64,000 nucleotides of DNA from Heterodontus francisci (Eukaryota): contig NC_090380.1 of assembly GCF_036365525.1 (NCBI RefSeq), positions 82,345,658 through 82,409,657 of the forward strand, given 5' to 3'. The translations under genes were made by a program, and so were the position numbers. Under the pieces are notes generated by a model, which did not search any database, was not told the DNA's origin, and worked only from the letters and a program-made list of their open reading frames with translations. Shown piece after piece: positions 33,720-58,444 of this stretch. Every line of letters starts with the position of its first letter. The stretch's first letter is position 1.

Positions 33720-33779
33720 CACACACCTTGCCAATGTTAAACATCCCACTACTTCCATGACCTCGTTAGGTAGGTCATT

Positions 33780-34950
33780 CCAGATGAACCTGACAGAACT
33801 TTTCGAAGAGGTGACTAAAGTAGTGGACAGTGGAATGTCTATGAATGTTATTTACATGGACTTCCAGAAGACATTTGATAAAGTCTCTCATAAGAGACTG
33901 TTAGCTGTATTTGGGGCTCGTGGAATTGAAGGCAAATTATTGACCTGGTTAGGAAATCGACTGAGCAAAAGGAGGCAGAGATTAGAGATAATGGGCAAGT
34001 ACTCTAATTGGCAGGATGTGACCAGTCATATCCTGTAAAGGCAATTACAATTCATAGTATTCATTAATGACTTAAATGATGGAATAGAAAGCCACATAGC
34101 CAAATTTACCAATGACCCAAGAATAGGAGGCATTGTAAGCTGTGTAGATGGAAGCATAAAATTATAGAGAGCTATTGATAGATTAAGTGAATGGGCAAAA
34201 TCATGGCAATGGATTTCAATGTAGACAAATGTGAGGTCATCCACTTTGGACAGAACAGGATAGAACAGAGTACTTTCTCAATGCTTAAAAGCAAGAAACA
34301 GTAATCAAAAAGGGTGATGGAATGCTGGTCTTTATATCTAGAGGACTAGAATACAAAGTGGTAGAAGTCATGCTTCAGCTATGCAAAGCACTGGTGAGAT
34401 CATATCTAGAGTACTGTGGCAGTTCTGGGCACCATACCTCAGGAAGGATATCCTGGCTCTGGAGGAAATGCAGTGTAGATTTATCAGAATGATACCTGAG
34501 CTCCAAGGGTACGAGGCAAAATTACACAAACCAGGGTTGTATTCCATGTAATTTGGAAGGTTAAGGGGTGATTTGATTGAAGTTTTCAAGATATTAAGGG
34601 GAACAGATAGGGTAGATAGAAACAAACTATTTCCAGTAGTTGGGGAGTCCAAGACTAGGGGGCAGAGTCTAACAAGAATAGCAAGACCTTTCAAGAGTGA
34701 AATTAGGAAAAACTTCTTCACACAAAGGGTAGAAGTTTGGAACTCTCTTCTGTAAATGGCAATCGATGCAAGATCAATTGTTAATTTTAAAACTGAGATT
34801 GATATAGTTTTGTTAGCCAAATGTATTAAAGGATATAGGGCAAAGGCGAGTATATGGAGTTAGGTCTCAGATCAGCCATGATTTAATTGAATGGTGGAAC
34901 AGACTCAAGGGGCTGAATGGCCTACTCCTATTCCTATGTTCTTATGTTCT
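33780..34950 (+). mobile_element. CR1 LINE, degenerate RT to 3' end
   Basis: NLTELFEEVTKVVD...IYMDFQKTFDKVSHKRLL and IEVFKILRGTDRVD...FFTQRVEVWNSL. Confidence 0.9.
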
Positions 34951-49450: not shown

Positions 49451-50660
49451 CTCTCCAGTGACATATTCATTAGCACTATCTTTCTATTTCTATACTCACT
49501 AGCACATGGCATCAGGAGTAACCCGTAGATTACTGCCTTTGAGGTCCTGCTTTTCAATCTTTCTCCGAGCTCCCGAAACTCTGCCTTCAGGATCTCATCC
49601 CTCTTTCTGCCAATGTCATTGGTGCCGACATGGACCACAACCTCTGGCTGTTCACCCTCCCACTTCAGAATGTCCTGCAGGTGTTCAGTCACATCCTTGA
49701 CCCTGGCACCAGGGAGGCAACACACCATCCTATGGCCAAGGAAGTGCCTGTCTGTTCCCCTCACTATCAAATCCCTACCATTATTTCTCTTCCACTCTTC
49801 CTCCTCCACTCTGTGCAGCTGAGCAATCGAAGTAATGGCATATGTATATATTTGTAGAGATATATTTATTTATTTAAATATTTACATATTTTCAGTGAAT
49901 GAACACTGGATTATTGCCTCCTTTTGTTGCCAATTATTCAGCTTTATAAAGTCTTATCTTTTTTTTATTCATTCATGGGATGTGGGCATCGCTGGCCAGG
50001 CCAGGATTTATTGCCCATCCCTCATTGCCCATAAGAAGGTAGTGGTGAGCTGCCTTCTTGAACTGCTACAGTCCAAGTGAGGTAGGTACACCCAGAGTGC
50101 TGTTAGGAAGGGAGTTCCAGGATTTTGACCCAGTGACAGTGAAGGAACAATGATATAGTTCCAAGTCAGGATGGTGTGTGACTTGGAGGGGAACTTGCAG
50201 GTGGTGGTGTTTCCATGCATTTGCTGCCCTTGTCCTTCTAGTTGGTAGAAGTTGCAGGTTTGGAAGGTGCTATCTAAGGAGCCTTGGTGTGTTGCGGCAG
50301 TGCATCTTGTAGATGGTACACACTGCTGCCACTGTGTGTCGGTGGTGGAGGGAGTGAATGTTGAAGGTTGTGAATGGGGTGCCAATCAAGCGGGCTGCTT
50401 TGTTCTGGGTGGTGTCGAACTTCTTGAGTGTTGTTTGAGATGTACCCATCCAGGCAAGTAGAGAGTATTTTATCACACTCGTGACTTGTGACTTGTGACT
50501 TGCTGATGGTGGACAGGCTTTGGGGAGTCAGGAGGTAAGTTACTCACCACAGGATTCCTAGCCTCTGACCTGCTCTTTCAGCCATGATATTTATATGGCT
50601 ACTCCAGTTCAGTTTCTGGTCAATGGTAACCCCTAGGATGTTGATAGTGGGGAATTCAGC

Positions 50661-51680
50661 TGTAGGCATGGCCATTTTTAAGCCTTTAAATCAGCCCAGG
50701 CCAAAGAACACTTTAAATTCAATCACTGTGGCCAGGGCACTTTGAATTCGACTCATGTGGACTGTCCCTTTAAATCACAAACAAATTGCCTCTGGACAAC
50801 GGAATAAAAATCAATTAAAGAAATACAGGGACAGGCTATCAAGCACTAAACAGCAGGGAGTTCACCAGCCAGTCTTTGAATGCTCAAAGACCTGATAAGG
50901 ATGCCATTCCCTGGACAAGTCATTTCAAATAAAATAAAACCGGTTATCAATTAGCACCCACTCTGGACATCTCCAAGCTATCAAGACATGATCAACTCAT
51001 CTCCCCTCCATTTTTCACCTACTCTCCTCAAACGAGGCAGGCAACCTTGTTCAAAAGATCTATTCAACAAGTTATATCTGACCTGTCTGACACAAACTCA
51101 TAGGATAATAACAAGACAGTTTTTGGTGTAAACCAATAACACTAACTGGTATAGGGTTTTGCAGCAGAGGAGTTTTTTTTCTTCAGCAAGAGCTTTACAG
51201 GGACAGTAAGAAAAGGCATGCCAGCATCTCCAGCAAACTGTACAGAGTGAGTGCAGAGAACATCAGCACATCAAGACCACAGAGCTCACATTTGAGTTCA
51301 GGACACGCATTGAAGTTAGGAGGCAAATCCTCGACCCAAGATAGACTCTGCACTGCAAACAACGACAGGCCGCTGCCCGCTACAAGACATCGGACCCATA
51401 AGTATCACCAACGAGACTACACGACACATTGCGTGGGCTAAGGTCCCCCTCTCAAACACACCAGACATACACCTTAGGTTAGACTGGGTGGGTGGTGTTT
51501 TTATAGCCATTGTACAAGATAGATTATAAGTGGTTTCACTGTTGGTTTTTGTTTAATAAATACCCTTGTTTGATTCATCATTTACCTGAGTGTTGTTTGA
51601 CATAATTTTCGAATTTCACTTCGCGATATCACAAGTGAGTGTTGGGGGAGGAGAGATTTTTACCGTTATGACCCCGCACA
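50661..51680 (+). mobile_element. About 1-kb non-coding insertion, probable solo LTR
   Basis: Interrupts LINE sequence (ATTCAGC | GATAGTAATGCC). TGT...ACA ends, AATAAA near 51555. TSD not resolved. Confidence 0.6.
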
Positions 51681-52969
51681 GATCAATCACAATTGATAGT
51701 AATGCCATTGAATGTCAAGGGGAGATGGTCAGATTCTCTCTTGTTGGAGATGGTGGTTGCCTGGCACTTGTGTGGAGCAAATGTTACTTGCCACTTATCA
51801 GCTCAAGCCTGTATATTGTCCAGCTCATGCTGCATTTCTACATGGACTGCTTCTGCATCTGAGGAGTCACGAATGGTGCTGAACATTGTGCAATCATCAG
51901 CGAACATCCCCACTTCTGACCTTATGATTGAAGGAAGGTCATTGATGAAGCAGCTGAAGATGGTTGGGCCTAGGACACTACCCTGAGGTACTCCTGCAGT
52001 GATGTCCTGGAGCTCAGATGATTGACCTCCAACAACCACAACCATCTTCCTTTGCATTAGGTATGACTCCAAACAGTGGAGAGTTTTCCCCCTGATTCCC
52101 ATTGATTTCAGTTTTGCGAGGGCTCCTTGATGCCATACTTGGTCAAATGCTGCCTTGATGTCAAGGGCAGCCACTCTCACTTCACCTCTTGAGTTCAGTT
52201 CTTATGGCAATGTTTGAACCAAGACTGTAATGAGGTCAGGAGCTGAGTGGCCCTGGCGGAACCCAAACTGATCGCCATTGAGCAGGTTATTGCTAAGCAA
52301 GTGCCGCTTGATGGCACTGTTGATGACACCTTCCATTACTTTACTGATGATCGAGAGTAGACTGATGGGGCAGTAATTGACTCGGTTGGACTTGTCCTGC
52401 TTTTTGTGTACAGAACATACCTGGGCAATTTTCCACATTGCCGGGTAGATGCCAGTGTTGTAACTGTACTGGAACAGCTTGGCGAGGGGTGTGGCAAATT
52501 CTGGAGCACAGGTATTCAGTACTATTGCCGGAATATTGTTAGGGCCCATAGCTTTTGCAGTATCCAGTGCCTCCAGTCATTTCCTGATATCACGCGGAGT
52601 GAATCGAATTGGCTGAAGTCTGGCATCTGTTTCCTTGCCCATGTTTGACTTGATGCCATGAGAATTCATGGGGTCCAGAGTTGATGTTGAGGACTCCCAG
52701 GGCAACTCTTATTTTTTTCCACAAAAATATACTTTATTCATAAAAAATCTGTAAAAAATACATTCCAACGCAGTTCAAAACAGCACCGAGTTGACATTCC
52801 AAAACGTGCAAAGGAAATCAGTTTTCTTAATACAGGAGTGAGTTGCCTCACAACCCTTCCATTTCAATTTACATGCCATGTACATTTTACAGCAAACCCA
52901 TATCTGGTGTCTGCAGCCTGAGGGGTTTCCCATGGGTCCAGCCCCTCAGTTCACTATGGTGGGAGGAAC

Positions 52970-55814
52970 TTACACGGTGGTCTTTCCCCATTGAGCATTT
53001 GCGGCGGCTGCCCCAAGCTTTAGTACGTCCATCAGCACATAGTCCTGGATCTTGGAATGTGCCAGTCTGCAACACTCGGACGTGGACAGCTCTTTGCGGT
53101 GGAAGACCAGCAAGTTTCGGGCAGACCAAAGAGTATCTTTCACCGAATTGATGGTCCTCCAGCAGCAGTTGATGTTTATCTTGGTGTGTGTCCCTGGGAA
53201 CAGCCCATAGAGCACAGACTCCTTTGTTACAGATCTGCTTGGGATGAACCTCAACAAAACCACTGCATCTCCTTCCACACCTGCTTTGCAAAGACACATT
53301 CCAGAAGGAGGTGGGCAACCATCTCTTGCCCACCACAGCCACCTCAAAGGCAGTGTGTGGAGGGGGTGAGACTCCAGGTGTGCAGGAAGGATCTGATGGG
53401 GAGGGCTCTTCTCACCACCTGCCAAACTACGTCTTGGTGCTTGTTTGAAAATTCTGGTGATGAGGCTCGGGGAACCATCCGACAGGATCCACCATCTCCT
53501 TTTCCTGTAGGGCCTTGAGGACATTCCCTGTAGTCCACTGCCTGATGGATTGGTGGTCAAAGGTGCTTTTCCACAATATGGGTGGTACGGCATGGTCCAA
53601 CTGGATGGAGCGTTCTGCGGCAATGTGACCAGACCCATCCTTCGCAACATCGGGGACAGTTCCCAAAGAACATGGCCTCACTCTTGCCGTGGTTAACTTT
53701 GGATCCTGATGCCAGTTCGAACTGGTCGCAGATGCTCATCAGTCTGCGAACGGACAGCGGATCCGAGCAGAAGACAGCGACATCATCCATGTACAGGGAG
53801 GCTTTGATCTGAATACCTCCGCTGCCTGGGATTGTCACCACTCTCATGCTCACATCCTTCCGAATAGAGTCTGCAAACAAACAAGACAGAGGAGAGAGGA
53901 CAGCCCTGTCTGACTCCAGATTGGATTGGGAAATTCTCTGATTCCCACGCATTGATTGAGACTGTGCTACTGATGTTTGTGTAGAGCAGTTTGATCCAAC
54001 AGCGGATTCCATCCCCAAACCTCATTTTGGAGAGCACGTCTATCATGTAGGTGTGCGATATCCTGTCAAAAGCCTTCTGGTCCAAGCTGATAAGGCAGGT
54101 GTCCACCCTCCTGTCCCGTACGTAGGTGATCATATCCCTGAGTAGCGCAAGACTATCAGAGATCTTTCTGCCAGGTACAGTACAGGTCTGGTCAGGATGA
54201 ATGACACGACTGGCGATAACTTTGGACAGAATCTTGTAATCAACATTAAGCAGTGAGATGGGCAGCCAATTTCTGATTTCTGCCCTCTCCCCCTTCTGCT
54301 TGTAGATGAGGGTGATGATGCCTTTCCTCATGGATTCTGACATGCTGCCGGTCAGAGGCATACTCTCGTATATGTCCAGCAGGTCTGGGCCAATCCAGTC
54401 CCACAGAGCCTAATACAACTCAACTGGTAAGCCGTCGCTTCCGGGAGTTTTACTCGTCTCGAAGGACCTGACAGCATTTGTCAGCTGGTCCAGAGTTAGC
54501 GATTTGTCCAGTTTCTTCCGCATGTTGTCATCTAAGACCTCCGTGATAGATGACAGGAAGGCCCTTAAGGCCGTGCTGTTTGTGGGCTTCACATCGTACA
54601 GCTCAGCATAAAAGGATTTGCTGATCCTTAGTATGTCAGACTGCAAAGACGTTAACGAGCCATCCTCTTCCTTCAGGCTGCTGATCACAGAGCTCTCTCT
54701 GTGTACCTTTTGGAAGAAGTAACGCGAGCATCCTGCTCAATGGAGCGAACTCTGGATCGGTAGATGATCTTGGAGGCCTCTGTGGCAAAGAGCGAGGCCT
54801 GCTGGCTCTTCACCTCTTGGAGATCCTCCTTGATCGCAACCCCCATCGACTGCAGCCGGAGCAGATTCTGCATTCTATTCTGGAGTCGGGACATTTCCCT
54901 CTGTCTCTCTCTCACCTTCTGAATACCTTTGAGGATAAAGAATCTCTTGATGTTCTGCTTGATCGCTTCCCACCAGTGGACTGGAGACTCAAAGAGGGGT
55001 TTCACGGTTCTCCAACCTTTGTAATCCCTTTTGAGTTCCTCAAGGTTCTGTGGGGTTAGCAGTGTAACATTGAGCTTCCATATCCCCCTGCCAACCCGCT
55101 GATCGTGCTGTAAGTAACAGTCGGCCAGTAAGAGGCAATCGTCAGAGATGAACACCGGCTTGACGTCGGTGACAGCATGGGACACAAACAGGAAGTCAAT
55201 CCTGGAACGGGCAGACCCGTCCGATCTTGACCAGGTGTCTCTACGCTGTGCTCCGCCTGCTGGTTTGCTGACATTTGCAGGTCGTGCAGCTTGGCATCTT
55301 TTAGTGTTTCCGTTAGGAATCTGGATATCGCGTCCAATTTGCTGTCATTACTTCCGGATCATCCAGCTGCATTGATGATGCAGTTGAAGTCACCGCCTAG
55401 AATGACCGGCGTGGACGATGCCAGCAGCAGTGGGAGCTGCTGGAAGACGGTCAGCCGCTCACTGCATTGAACCGGGGCGTACAGGTTGATCAACTGGAGC
55501 AGAGCATTGTCGTACATTACATCTGCTACGAGGAGGTGATCACCCACCACCTCCTTAACTTCGGAGGTGGTGAAGTTGCCTCCCTGCAGCAGAATACCCA
55601 GGCCGGAGGAACGGGAATCATTACCCCCTGACCAGATCAATGGCCCATGGGACCACCATCGCAACCATTGCCTGTAGGTGCTGAGGTGGGGAATTCCACA
55701 CTCCTGCAGAAACAGTAGGTCGGCTTTGATCTTGGCGAGGTAGTCCAAGGTCAAAACACATTGTGTAGTAGATTTAACGCTAAGCATGTTAATCGAAGCA
55801 ATCTTTATACCAAT
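52970..55814 (-). pseudogene. Tx1 ORF2: APE endonuclease, RT and C-terminal zinc-binding region; fragmented, with internal deletions
   Basis: IKIASIN, ADLLFLQECG, INLYAP, ILGGDFNC, SDDCLL, KTPGSDGLPVELY, NWLPISLLNVDYKILSK, SGVRQGCPLS, SLYMDDV. Confidence 0.92.
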
Positions 55815-57355
55815 TTTAAAGTTGGGTGTTGCACACCAGTTGTCCTTGCTGGTCCCAGTTCTTGGGTATGTTCTTGCATACCCATAGTGTGCACAAGCTG
55901 TTTCACATTCGTTGGGCTCAGAAACCCCTCCTGGTTACTCATGGGGGGTTTGTTCCACTGGGGGTGACATTGCGGGGGGGGCTTGTAAGCAGCAAGGCTT
56001 GGGCTGTCCTCTGCTGTTGGTGTCTTTCTCCTCTGTTCCTCCTCAAAGACATCACTGCTCCCGGCTTCCCGGAGCTGGAGTGCGCCTGACGCTTCTTTGC
56101 TCTTGGTGTCCCGGAACTGGGATGCGCTGGGCATCTCGCTGGGTTCGGCGCTTTGGGTTTGGGGCGTGCTGAGCCCATCACAGCTTCCAGTGCCCGGGGA
56201 CTGGGGGGCTTTCTCTTCCAGCTCCTTTGAGTTCTGCCGCTTCTTTTGCAGGTGCAATCGTTCCGGCCCTTCCTTGTCCAATGAGGAGGAGCTGCCATAG
56301 TCCGTCTAAGACGGTAGCCTCCTCTTGCCACTGGTTTGGGTAGTGGCCTGTTCCTTTTTTGGAGGTTTTTCCTTTGTGATTTTCCTTTTTAACCACTTGC
56401 CACTGACCAGTTTGTCCATCTGCTGCCTCCTCCTCCATTGATTCTGTCTGTAGAGGAGGGGTTTCCGGGCACAGGGTAGGTGTTGGGTCGCTGGTTGCAT
56501 CTGCCTCCCCTTTGTTCTCCTTCTCAGATAGACTTTCCTCGCTGTGGAGAGGGTTGTTTGTCTCCTTCCCAGCACCAGATGCATTCACCGTTCCTTCTCC
56601 CAGCCTTTCCTTGGACCTTGCCGCCTGAGCATAACTGAGGCAATATTTGGGGAAGGTAGAGGTGGCCTGCCTCACCACACAGGTCGCAGCACTTACTCTG
56701 CTTACAGTCCTTGGTCTGATGGCTTTCCTTCATGGAGACGACTGTGCTGCAGTTGGCTGCCATGTGACCAGATTTGCCACAGATCCGACAAACTCTGGGC
56801 TGCCCTGCAGAGACCAAGAAGCCTGGACTTCTCCCAATAGCCAAGCTGGAGGGGGGATGGATGATGGCTCCATTGGCATTGACCTTCAAGGTCACCTTGA
56901 CCTGCCGCTTGCTGGTCCAAATCCCAAATGGGTCCTTGACATCAGTGCTGCTGCCGGCCCCCTCAACGTACCTGGCGAGGAAGGTGAGTACATCCACGAC
57001 AGGAACATGAGGGTTGTAGAGGTGGCTTGTCACCACCTGGTCATGTTGCGACATCAGAGTGAAGAGCAGCTCCACTGTGAGGATGGACAGCAGCGCCTGG
57101 TTTCCCTTTCTCCTTGAACACTTTCAGGAACTTGATGCATCCCGCCACGTTCTTGAACGTCTCGTCGAAATATCCACTGCCGGGGAAGTCCTGCAGGCAG
57201 AAGGTGTCTGCAGCTTGGAATCCACAGCAATTGATAAGGATTTTCTTGATGAAGAAGGTATGGTACACAGGTGCACCTCCTTCCTTATCCTTTACCACCA
57301 CCCGAACAGTGTTATGCACTCCTTAGCCTGAAGCTCTAGAATTGGTTACAGCCAT
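55815..57355 (-). pseudogene. Tx1 ORF1: gag-like CCHC zinc-knuckle protein (ZCCHC3-like), disrupted
   Basis: ATG at 57355. MAVTNSRASG*GVHNTVRVVV..FCLQDFPGSGYFD, DPFGIWTSKRQ, CRICGKSGHMAANC, CDLCGEAGHLY, then a low-complexity tail. Confidence 0.88.
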
Positions 57356-57393
57356 TTTACTCAAGACCTACCTGGAACAAGATCAAAGGCCAC

Positions 57394-57425
57394 TGATCAT
57401 GGTTTCTTCCCCTGCCAGGTAAGTA
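57394..57425 (-). ncRNA. U1 snRNA 5' fragment (about nt 2-32) forming the head of the Tx1 element; not a functional snRNA gene
   Basis: TACTTACCTGGCAGGGGAAGAAACCATGATCA versus human U1 (A)TACTTACCTGGCAGGGGAGATACCATGATCA: one insertion and one substitution. Confidence 0.93.
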
Positions 57426-57487
57426 ACTCCCTGTGCAACTCCCTCCCGACTGTGTACCACTGTCCTGCTGGTGGGGGGACAGGTTCT

Positions 57488-57682
57488 GCCGTGGGATCTT
57501 TTATGTCCACCTGATAGGGCAAATAAGGCCTCAGTTCAATATCGCATCCAAAAGACACTGCCTCCAACAGCACAGCATTCCCTCAGTACTACACTGGACT
57601 GTCAGCCTTGATTTTTGTGCATGAGTCCTGAAATGGGTCTTCTGACTCAAAGTTGAGAATGCAATCAAATGAGCCACAGCTG
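57488..57682 (-). mobile_element. Deu-domain SINE (SacSINE1-like) head and body fragment
   Basis: GGGATCTTTTATGTCCACCTGA...CATCCAAAAGAC...CCCTCAGTACTACACTGGA.TGTCAGCC. Confidence 0.65.
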
Positions 57683-58444
57683 ATGTGATGTATTTTAGAT
57701 CACAGTATCAATCCACCAACTGTGAATGACCCAATTTTAAATGATTGAAAATGACTTTTAATAAATTTGCAAAACATTTTTCTCGTTAGATGGGGGTACA
57801 GTAGTCAGTTCCTTAGTAACTTAAAAAGTTATTATTTAAAACCTTTCATAATGTACCTATTAGTGCCCTTGTGCTTAATATTTGGAGCTTCCCCAAATGG
57901 CTGCAGACAAATGCAATTAGCGGAAACTCTCGATGGTGATTAATTCACCCTGGGGTTATGGCCTGCTTCTAATGCAATGTCTTTAATACTAACCTAAAAG
58001 ATCACAGAAACTCAAATTGTGTTGAATGCAATTTGTGCTTTAAATTCTACAAACTTTTGTGCCGGTTACGCCAATATCGGGGGACATGCACTGAAGAAAA
58101 GAGCACAATCGAGTAGAAACTCCAGGCCGTAATCTTTGCAATGTCACATTAAGCAGCTGTCTTAAAAAGGCACTGTCTTTATGAAAAAATGTTCTGCAAA
58201 CTAATTTTGTTTGGGTTGAACAGTAACAACAACACCTAGGGTAGGTTCAAATTGAAGCAACTCTCCTGACGCTTATGTGTGGGGAACTCAGTTTGAATAC
58301 AATCCATTTATATGTTCGTTGTCTCCATTGTTATTCCTGCATTTTCTTACCTGCTGAATGCAGATAAATTCAAGCAGAAATTTTTTTTTGGTCATGGGCG
58401 TGAGTGTCACTGCCAAGGCTGACATTTGTTTCTCATCCCTAATT

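Follow-up and report, generated by a model that had tools for sequence, protein, structure and literature searches.

In crocodilians, several long interspersed elements (LINEs) of the Tx1 clade begin with a piece of a spliceosomal small nuclear RNA (snRNA). Tx1-2_Crp, Tx1-2B_Crp and Tx1-4_AMi carry U1-derived sequences, or heads, at their 5' ends and do not target U1 genes (Kojima 2015, PMC4494074), and Tx1-11_Crp carries a U2 head (Kojima 2015, Genome Biol Evol, PMC4494074). Template switching was invoked in that study for the recurrent addition of U1 and U2 sequence to the 5' ends of crocodilian SINEU and Tx1 elements, SINEU having been found there only in crocodilians (PMC4494074), and template switching is also the accepted mechanism for snRNA–L1 chimeras. 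Other elements take snRNA genes as their targets: those named as of late 2015 are Keno and Utopia (both U2), Dada-U1 and Dada-U6, and a figure legend names U5 snRNA as a further target of a Tx1 family (Kojima 2015, Fig. 3 legend, PMC4494074). Here, we describe a U1-headed LINE in a cartilaginous fish, the shark Heterodontus francisci. It lies in a 64,000-nt stretch of contig NC_090380.1 (hereafter the window, with positions counted from its first nucleotide), where one copy of 4.7 kb runs on the minus strand from 57425 to 52709 between two copies of a target-site duplication (TSD). We find that the U1 head and its junction with the sequence that follows are features of a lineage that exists in many copies and in no fewer than two organisms, and we consider it probable that the head was added once, to the ancestor of one subfamily, and has since then been copied as part of the RNA.

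What identifies the first nucleotides of the element as U1? Two features make up its 5' untranslated region (UTR), ahead of the first open reading frame (ORF1):

57394 to 57425, minus strand: U1-derived head of 32 nt, TACTTACCTGGCAGGGGAAGAAACCATGATCA, which opens the inserted unit (Rfam U1 alignment)
57356 to 57393, minus strand: leader of 38 nt, from the head to the ATG of ORF1 (read from the sequence)

With 71 nt of the 5' UTR as the query, positions 1–32 of the Rfam U1 model align to 57425–57394, and all highly conserved positions of the model are matched in the head (UACUUACCUGG, GG and GAUCA). With the second strand of stem-loop I absent, only half a stem can be scored, which keeps the score low (9.9 bits, E 0.7); the head ends within the loop of U1 stem-loop I. 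The first-pass annotation, which was made from the letters of the window, had the element start exactly with U1 nt 2–32. A U1 head does stand at the first nucleotide, but the match is not exact: relative to vertebrate U1, the head has an extra A at 57407 and one U-to-A change, which leaves about 29–30 of the 31 positions alike. The 5'-most 18-mer of the head occurs a single time in the window (with up to three mismatches allowed, 0.05 matches are expected), and this rarity, together with its place at the very first nucleotide of the insertion, means that chance is not a reasonable explanation. In scans of the 64-kb window with Rfam, no family scored at its gathering threshold, and hence no snRNA or U1 gene was detected; at permissive thresholds, the head alone was found as U1, and no family accounted for the 38-nt leader. 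The leader had also been threaded by eye, with several gaps, as U1 nt 38–60 or as the 5' region of U2, and both threadings were rejected as unsupported because the covariance models neither extend the U1 match nor give a U2 match. The annotated distance of 38 nt from the head to the ATG at 57355 stands: in alignment, a homologous ORF1 protein (P0007) has its N-terminus no more than one residue away from that ATG; the start of ORF1 is thus well placed, and the 5' UTR is 70 nt long.

The evidence that the head is a trait of a lineage comes from public sequencing runs, which were aligned to 56786–57745 of the window at 80% likeness and scored in bins, one of which, 32 nt long, is exactly the head. 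Run X21 holds raw DNA reads of a capture library under the same species label; its single-copy depth is uncalibrated, so that its headed copies can be put at 'dozens or more'. That runs X5 and X6 are RNA is a guess, and their depths carry no expression meaning. Differences are given as the window copy versus most reads, rather than against a consensus or a mended element. The depths are as follows:

X21, raw DNA reads: 308 in the ORF1-start bin (57330–57361), 129 in the leader bin (57362–57393), 56 in the head bin (57394–57425) and 3.5–5.5 in the far flank
X1, DNA contigs, summed word depth: 31391 in the ORF1-start bin, 20805 in the leader bin and 9073 in the head bin
X6, organism A, possibly RNA: 407 in the ORF1-start bin, 149 in the leader bin and 65 in the head bin
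X5, a different organism, possibly RNA: 305 in the ORF1-start bin, 196 in the leader bin and 182 in the head bin

Individual contigs tell the same story of many headed copies. In X1, 32 distinct contigs have the head with a 1-nt deletion at 57407, and these make up about 12% of the summed depth at that position; since heads without the extra A account for so small a share, many more distinct contigs must carry the head as it is in the window copy. Similarity ends exactly at 57425 in record 7 of X1 (727 nt) and in record 15 of X5 (573 nt, from the other organism). The minus-strand coordinates of these two records are ambiguous, such that each contig either ends there or enters another flank; under either coordinate reading, the similarity stops at 57425, which marks this nucleotide as the common 5' end of the repeat. 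The exact patterns of the head/leader junction and of the leader gave no match in metagenome, bacterial/archaeal or viral contigs, collections that are without shark genomes.

These data bear directly on the other origin that the first-pass annotation had entertained, a one-off chimera, in which a single U1/LINE template switch, like that of human U6–L1, gave rise to the window copy alone. Chimeras of L1 with U6, U1, U2 and U5 are well known (Buzdin 2002 and Garcia-Perez 2007, as cited in PMC4494074), and the window copy is enclosed by a normal TSD, just as such a chimera would be. A solitary event, however, does not give raw-read coverage of about 56x, and dozens of distinct contigs, for the head and an identical junction with the leader, nor does it place both in another organism, where the similarity stops at the very nucleotide at which it stops here. 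Might the many copies be segmental duplicates of one locus? Against this version stand the fall in depth and the loose ends that are seen at 57426. We therefore give up the one-off chimera as extremely improbable.

The window copy also records how the element came to its present site. The remaining features of the insertion, all on the minus strand, are these:

57426 to 57441, minus strand: 5' copy of the TSD, gagttgcacagggagt, 16 bp, its sequence read directly
55808 to 57355, minus strand: ORF1 remnant, with two ZCCHC3-type RNA-binding domains, CCHC zinc knuckles and a low-complexity tail
52890 to 55934, minus strand: remnant of the second open reading frame (ORF2), with an apurinic/apyrimidinic endonuclease (APE)-type endonuclease, a reverse transcriptase (RT) and a C-terminal region, in several frame pieces
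52733 to 52738, minus strand: AATAAA polyadenylation signal (read from the sequence)
52709 to 52718, minus strand: A tail of 10 nt, AAAAAAATAA (read from the sequence)
52693 to 52708, minus strand: 3' copy of the TSD, gagttgccctgggagt, which equals the consensus state of the flanking repeat family
51806 to 52692, resuming upstream of 57441, minus strand: RT region of the host LINE, which is older than the element and unrelated to it (RVT_1 and continuity of the open reading frame)

The annotated coordinates of the 16-bp TSD that encloses the element hold: its two copies (57441–57426 and 52708–52693) are identical at 14 of 16 positions. The mismatches are at 57432 and 57434, where reads from other copies of the flanking LINE nearly all carry the letters of the 3' TSD copy; the differences are thus private to the 5' copy, and the duplication was 16/16 when it was made. 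Copies of the flanking repeat that lack the insertion are represented by 379 raw reads, in which 57426 joins directly to the sequence below 52693; this confirms the empty site and sets the insertion boundary exactly at 57425|57426. With this boundary and a multi-copy head, the earlier proposal that the U1 piece is part of the mobile unit and travelled with it is borne out. When the empty site is reconstructed from the flanks and one TSD copy, an open frame crosses the junction into RT motifs, and the 3' flank matches RVT_1 of Pfam (1.3e-19). The site of insertion is thus the RT region of a LINE that is older than the element, unrelated to it and oriented in the same direction; in other words, the flanks are an old LINE and not a U1 gene, as had been proposed, with RVT_1 in the flank and no U1 gene in the window. 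This host LINE spans 57426–57680 and 50000–52692 on the minus strand, with its RT at 51806–52576, and it is very abundant, its summed contig depth reaching several thousand in X5 and X6, far above that of the Tx1-type element. No second copy of the element was found within the 64-kb window by blastn or tblastn. An RT-like stretch on the plus strand at 33730–33951, with 28% identity over 74 aa to the RT of the element, is a remnant of another, unrelated retroelement.

How, then, did a LINE come to begin with U1? The explanation that we favour, and consider probable, is a single addition followed by inheritance. In this scheme, a copy of the 5'-terminal 32 nt or so of U1 snRNA would open the transcription unit of an L1/Tx1-type subfamily. 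As complementary DNA (cDNA) synthesis came to its end at the 5' terminus of the LINE RNA, the RT would have switched to U1 snRNA as its template; later, the head would have been passed on as 5' UTR by ordinary target-primed reverse transcription into dispersed sites, the site of the window copy being the RT region of another LINE, with its 16-bp TSD. Transcription would start at the head, by way of putative promoter elements inside the short 5' UTR or at the start of ORF1. The clearest sign of inheritance is the extra A at 57407: it is absent in 8 of 71 raw reads, such that about 89% of reads have it, and it is not known from canonical vertebrate U1. That most heads share this derived letter argues for descent from a common master, rather than for repeated capture or refreshment from many U1 genes. 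As to the origin of the head, template switching is favoured on the analogy of the crocodilian elements and the snRNA–L1 chimeras.

Could the lineage instead insert into U1 genes? According to this alternative, the headed subfamily is, or directly descends from, a U1 gene-specific Tx1 lineage that targets U1 genes near nt 32; its masters would lie about 32 nt into U1 genes and be transcribed from the external U1 promoter, with its proximal and distal sequence elements (PSE/DSE), and the dispersed copies would be off-target daughters. Specificity for small-RNA genes does occur in several families of the Tx1 clade: a figure legend lists Keno, whose target is U2, along with families that target U5 and 5S (PMC4494074, Fig. 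3 legend). The U2 3' flank of Keno and Utopia begins at nt 39, which would give a head of about 38 nt by co-transcription, near the length of the head here. Additionally, the element starts at U1 nt 2, its 5' UTR has only 70 nt, and its 5' end falls precisely at 57425 in contigs of two organisms, as would be expected from an outside promoter that fixes position +1. The further argument that so short a 5' UTR leaves no room for an internal promoter is weak, because several LINEs, jockey and the I factor among them, accommodate an internal promoter of the initiator type in the first tens of nucleotides.

Several observations at the window locus and elsewhere run counter to U1 targeting. The window copy sits inside another LINE, neither of its flanks is U1, and the window has no U1 gene. 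By inspection, the TSD region is without U1 similarity beyond chance; when the target site is compared with U1 at about nt 16–32, the best local match is 8/10, which by our own estimate is the chance level. Most heads carry the derived extra A, whereas canonical heads would be expected if they were renewed from many U1 target genes. The crocodilian U1-headed Tx1 families prefer a Mariner transposon over U1 genes (PMC4494074), no U1-targeting LINE had been reported as of 2015, and no U1-flank evidence for targeting emerged in this analysis. We hold targeting of U1 genes to be distinctly unlikely. If it were true, the shark lineage would be the first U1-targeting non-long-terminal-repeat retrotransposon, and the snRNA heads of Tx1 LINEs and SINEU in distant vertebrates would stem from co-transcription with a target gene and not from template switching. 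A more limited variant concerns the head alone, which may have been acquired by 5' transduction from a master copy sitting inside a U1 gene. The same coordinate in Keno and Utopia, whose 3' U2 flank from nt 39 implies a co-transcribed head of similar length, speaks for this variant, as does the precision of start that an external PSE promoter would confer; we regard it as less likely than template switching.

Returning to the single addition and inheritance of the head, we turn to the points that weigh against it. The depth of the head in X21 is only about 18% of that at the start of ORF1 (56 vs 308): depth more than halves from the start of ORF1 to the leader and then falls again into the head, a loss well above the quarter or so that, by our own estimate, clipping at a repeat edge should cost at most with 144-nt reads. 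Record 10 of X5 and record 21 of X6 match only to 57358, three bases upstream of the ATG, and beyond this position they carry 171 and 748 nt, respectively, of unrelated sequence. In other words, most ORF1-related copies either begin with another sequence or are truncated at the 5' end, and the headed form makes up one subfamily among them. The argument from the extra A assumes that the U1 genes of the host species have the canonical vertebrate sequence. A start held at U1 +1 over many generations is also what one would expect from a U1 PSE promoter, and, the other copies being known from read and contig matches alone, a master or even many copies may sit in U1 genes. Finally, assignment to the Tx1 clade rests on architecture and not on phylogeny. 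For the depth profile, the simplest reading is that there are several subfamilies, at least 80% alike in ORF1, whose 5' UTRs differ and may be longer, and that 5' truncation contributes to the fall in depth. Such diversity of 5' UTRs in the shark LINE recalls SINEU-1, for which repeated replacement of the 5' head has been described.

The window copy is old, full-length and dead. Its ORF1 is interrupted by an in-frame stop at codon 11 and by at least three frameshifts (frames 3/1/2/3 in tblastn with homologous ORF1 proteins), and ORF2 is spread over several frames, which is why we call the copy inactivated. The first-pass annotation had ORF1, ORF2, AATAAA and an A tail follow the head; the order stands, but neither ORF is intact, and the A tail has a mere 10 nt. 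ORF1 matches PF23057 (9.2e-15), PF23058 (2.7e-20) and PF00098 (8.5e-05) of Pfam. In ORF2, the endonuclease at about 55380–55748 matches Exo_endo_phos (3e-05) with 24.3 bits, just below the cut-off of 24.5, in what is a degraded copy, and the reverse transcriptase at 53560–54409 matches RVT_1 (3.9e-17 and 5.1e-06). An N-terminal APE endonuclease followed by an RT in ORF2, together with RNA-binding domains and CCHC knuckles in ORF1, is a Tx1-type architecture, this make-up of ORF1 being usual for Tx1. Judged by these domains, the element is an L1/Tx1-type LINE, in agreement with the earlier call, and its membership in the Tx1 clade is assigned from architecture.

Database matches add taxonomic breadth. 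The nearest RT matches include amphibian (Pleurodeles) proteins, and the nearest ORF1 matches are ZCCHC3-like proteins of skate and shark. None of the RT and ORF1 homologues bears a Tx1 name, the RT homologues being unnamed or 'hypothetical', and a search of the ESM Atlas returned generic RT clusters with no clade name. The ORF1 database proteins closest to the element, at 60–62% identity, are P0001 (Leucoraja erinacea) and P0151 (Heptranchias perlo); both are annotated as the host 'zinc finger CCHC domain-containing protein 3-like', and both are probably LINE ORF1 copies rather than ZCCHC3 orthologues. A paper on ZCCHC3 contained nothing on where its domains came from. Within ORF1 of the window copy, 163 raw reads share a loose end at 57104, and single-base deletions cluster at 57102–57107; this spot, at a change of frame in ORF1, appears to be a private rearrangement or indel of the window copy.

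Does the head do anything for the element? The leader contains a splice-donor-like motif, CCAGGTAGGT (57375–57366), that is complementary to nt 2–11 of the head. The predicted helix between head nt 2–11 and leader nt 51–60 has 10 contiguous bp, or 15 pairs with a 2-nt bulge, and the region 57366–57425 folds with a minimum free energy (MFE) of −23.7 kcal/mol (z −2.18). One may imagine that the head was co-opted, such that its hairpin with CCAGGTAGGT would hide a cryptic 5' splice site or shield the 5' terminus; in a second reading, the motif might have recruited the U1 small nuclear ribonucleoprotein (snRNP), favouring the template switch. For such a role speak the stability of the fold and the rarity of the 10-bp helix (P ~0.003, as 0.3% of leaders after shuffling, or of 38-mers drawn at random from the window, form one of that length). 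The read differences point the same way: at 57380, nearly all reads differ from the window copy, and the change turns a G–U pair of the helix into G–C, thereby strengthening it, while the CCAGGTAGGT motif has no majority read difference among the rows shown. The idea, however, is post hoc and was drawn from one sequence, its z-score is modest, and any good splice donor pairs with the 5' end of U1 by construction. We consider both readings speculative and unlikely. The same region also contains an upstream open reading frame (57383–57400, minus strand) of 5 codons, ATG ATC AGT GGC CTT TGA; its AUG at 57400 lies inside the head (U1 nt 26–28), and its stop lies 28 nt ahead of the ATG of ORF1.

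SnRNA-headed retroposons, namely SINEU and certain Tx1 families, had previously been described from crocodilians alone. A propagating U1-headed Tx1-type LINE in a cartilaginous fish means either that the link between Tx1 elements and snRNA 5' ends is very old or that it arises repeatedly. A many-copy shark genome offers a second, independent system in which template switching can be set against co-transcription from snRNA genes, and in which the head and its complementary splice-donor-like motif can be tested for function. A full-text literature search found no description of a U1-headed LINE in sharks. The first-pass annotation left it undecided whether a family like this one had been catalogued before. 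Its kind has been, from crocodilians (Kojima 2015, PMC4494074), and the shark element brings a new host group to a published phenomenon and not a new mechanism.

Comparison with the known systems makes this plain. Elements that carry 5' host sequence by way of a host promoter or gene start, such as 5'-transducing SVA (MAST2) and R2 co-transcribed with 28S rRNA (both as mentioned in PMC4494074), have a host promoter context; the shark LINE is likened to them by the carried 5' host sequence alone. Keno (Kojima & Fujiwara 2004, as cited in PMC4494074 and PMC4640811) shares with the shark LINE a Tx1-type make-up and a link to a spliceosomal snRNA. As described in those citing papers, it inserts about 38 nt into the snRNA gene, such that a co-transcribed head would be similar in length to the shark head; its copies, however, are flanked by fragments of U2 genes, whereas the window copy is without U1 flanks. 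The mammalian U6/L1 and other snRNA–L1 chimeras (Buzdin 2002 and Garcia-Perez 2007, as cited in PMC4494074) likewise have an snRNA 5' of a LINE within one TSD, and the origin is likely the same. As cited there, they are independent, dead-on-arrival events with variable junctions; in the shark, by contrast, one junction is common to many copies, which indicates that the chimera itself became a propagating lineage. Closest of all are the crocodilian Tx1-Mar families with their SINEU partners; like the shark LINE, these families are autonomous Tx1-type elements with an inherited U1 5' fragment and with copies away from U1 genes. In both, a U1-derived extreme 5' end is common to the copies of the family. 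They differ in host (crocodilian versus cartilaginous fish), in the length of the head (about 50 nt implied by the SINEU-2 coordinates in crocodilians versus 32 nt clearly U1 in the shark LINE) and in the site of insertion, which is Mariner-N4_AMi for crocodilian Tx1-Mar and, for the one shark copy in the window (n=1), another LINE.

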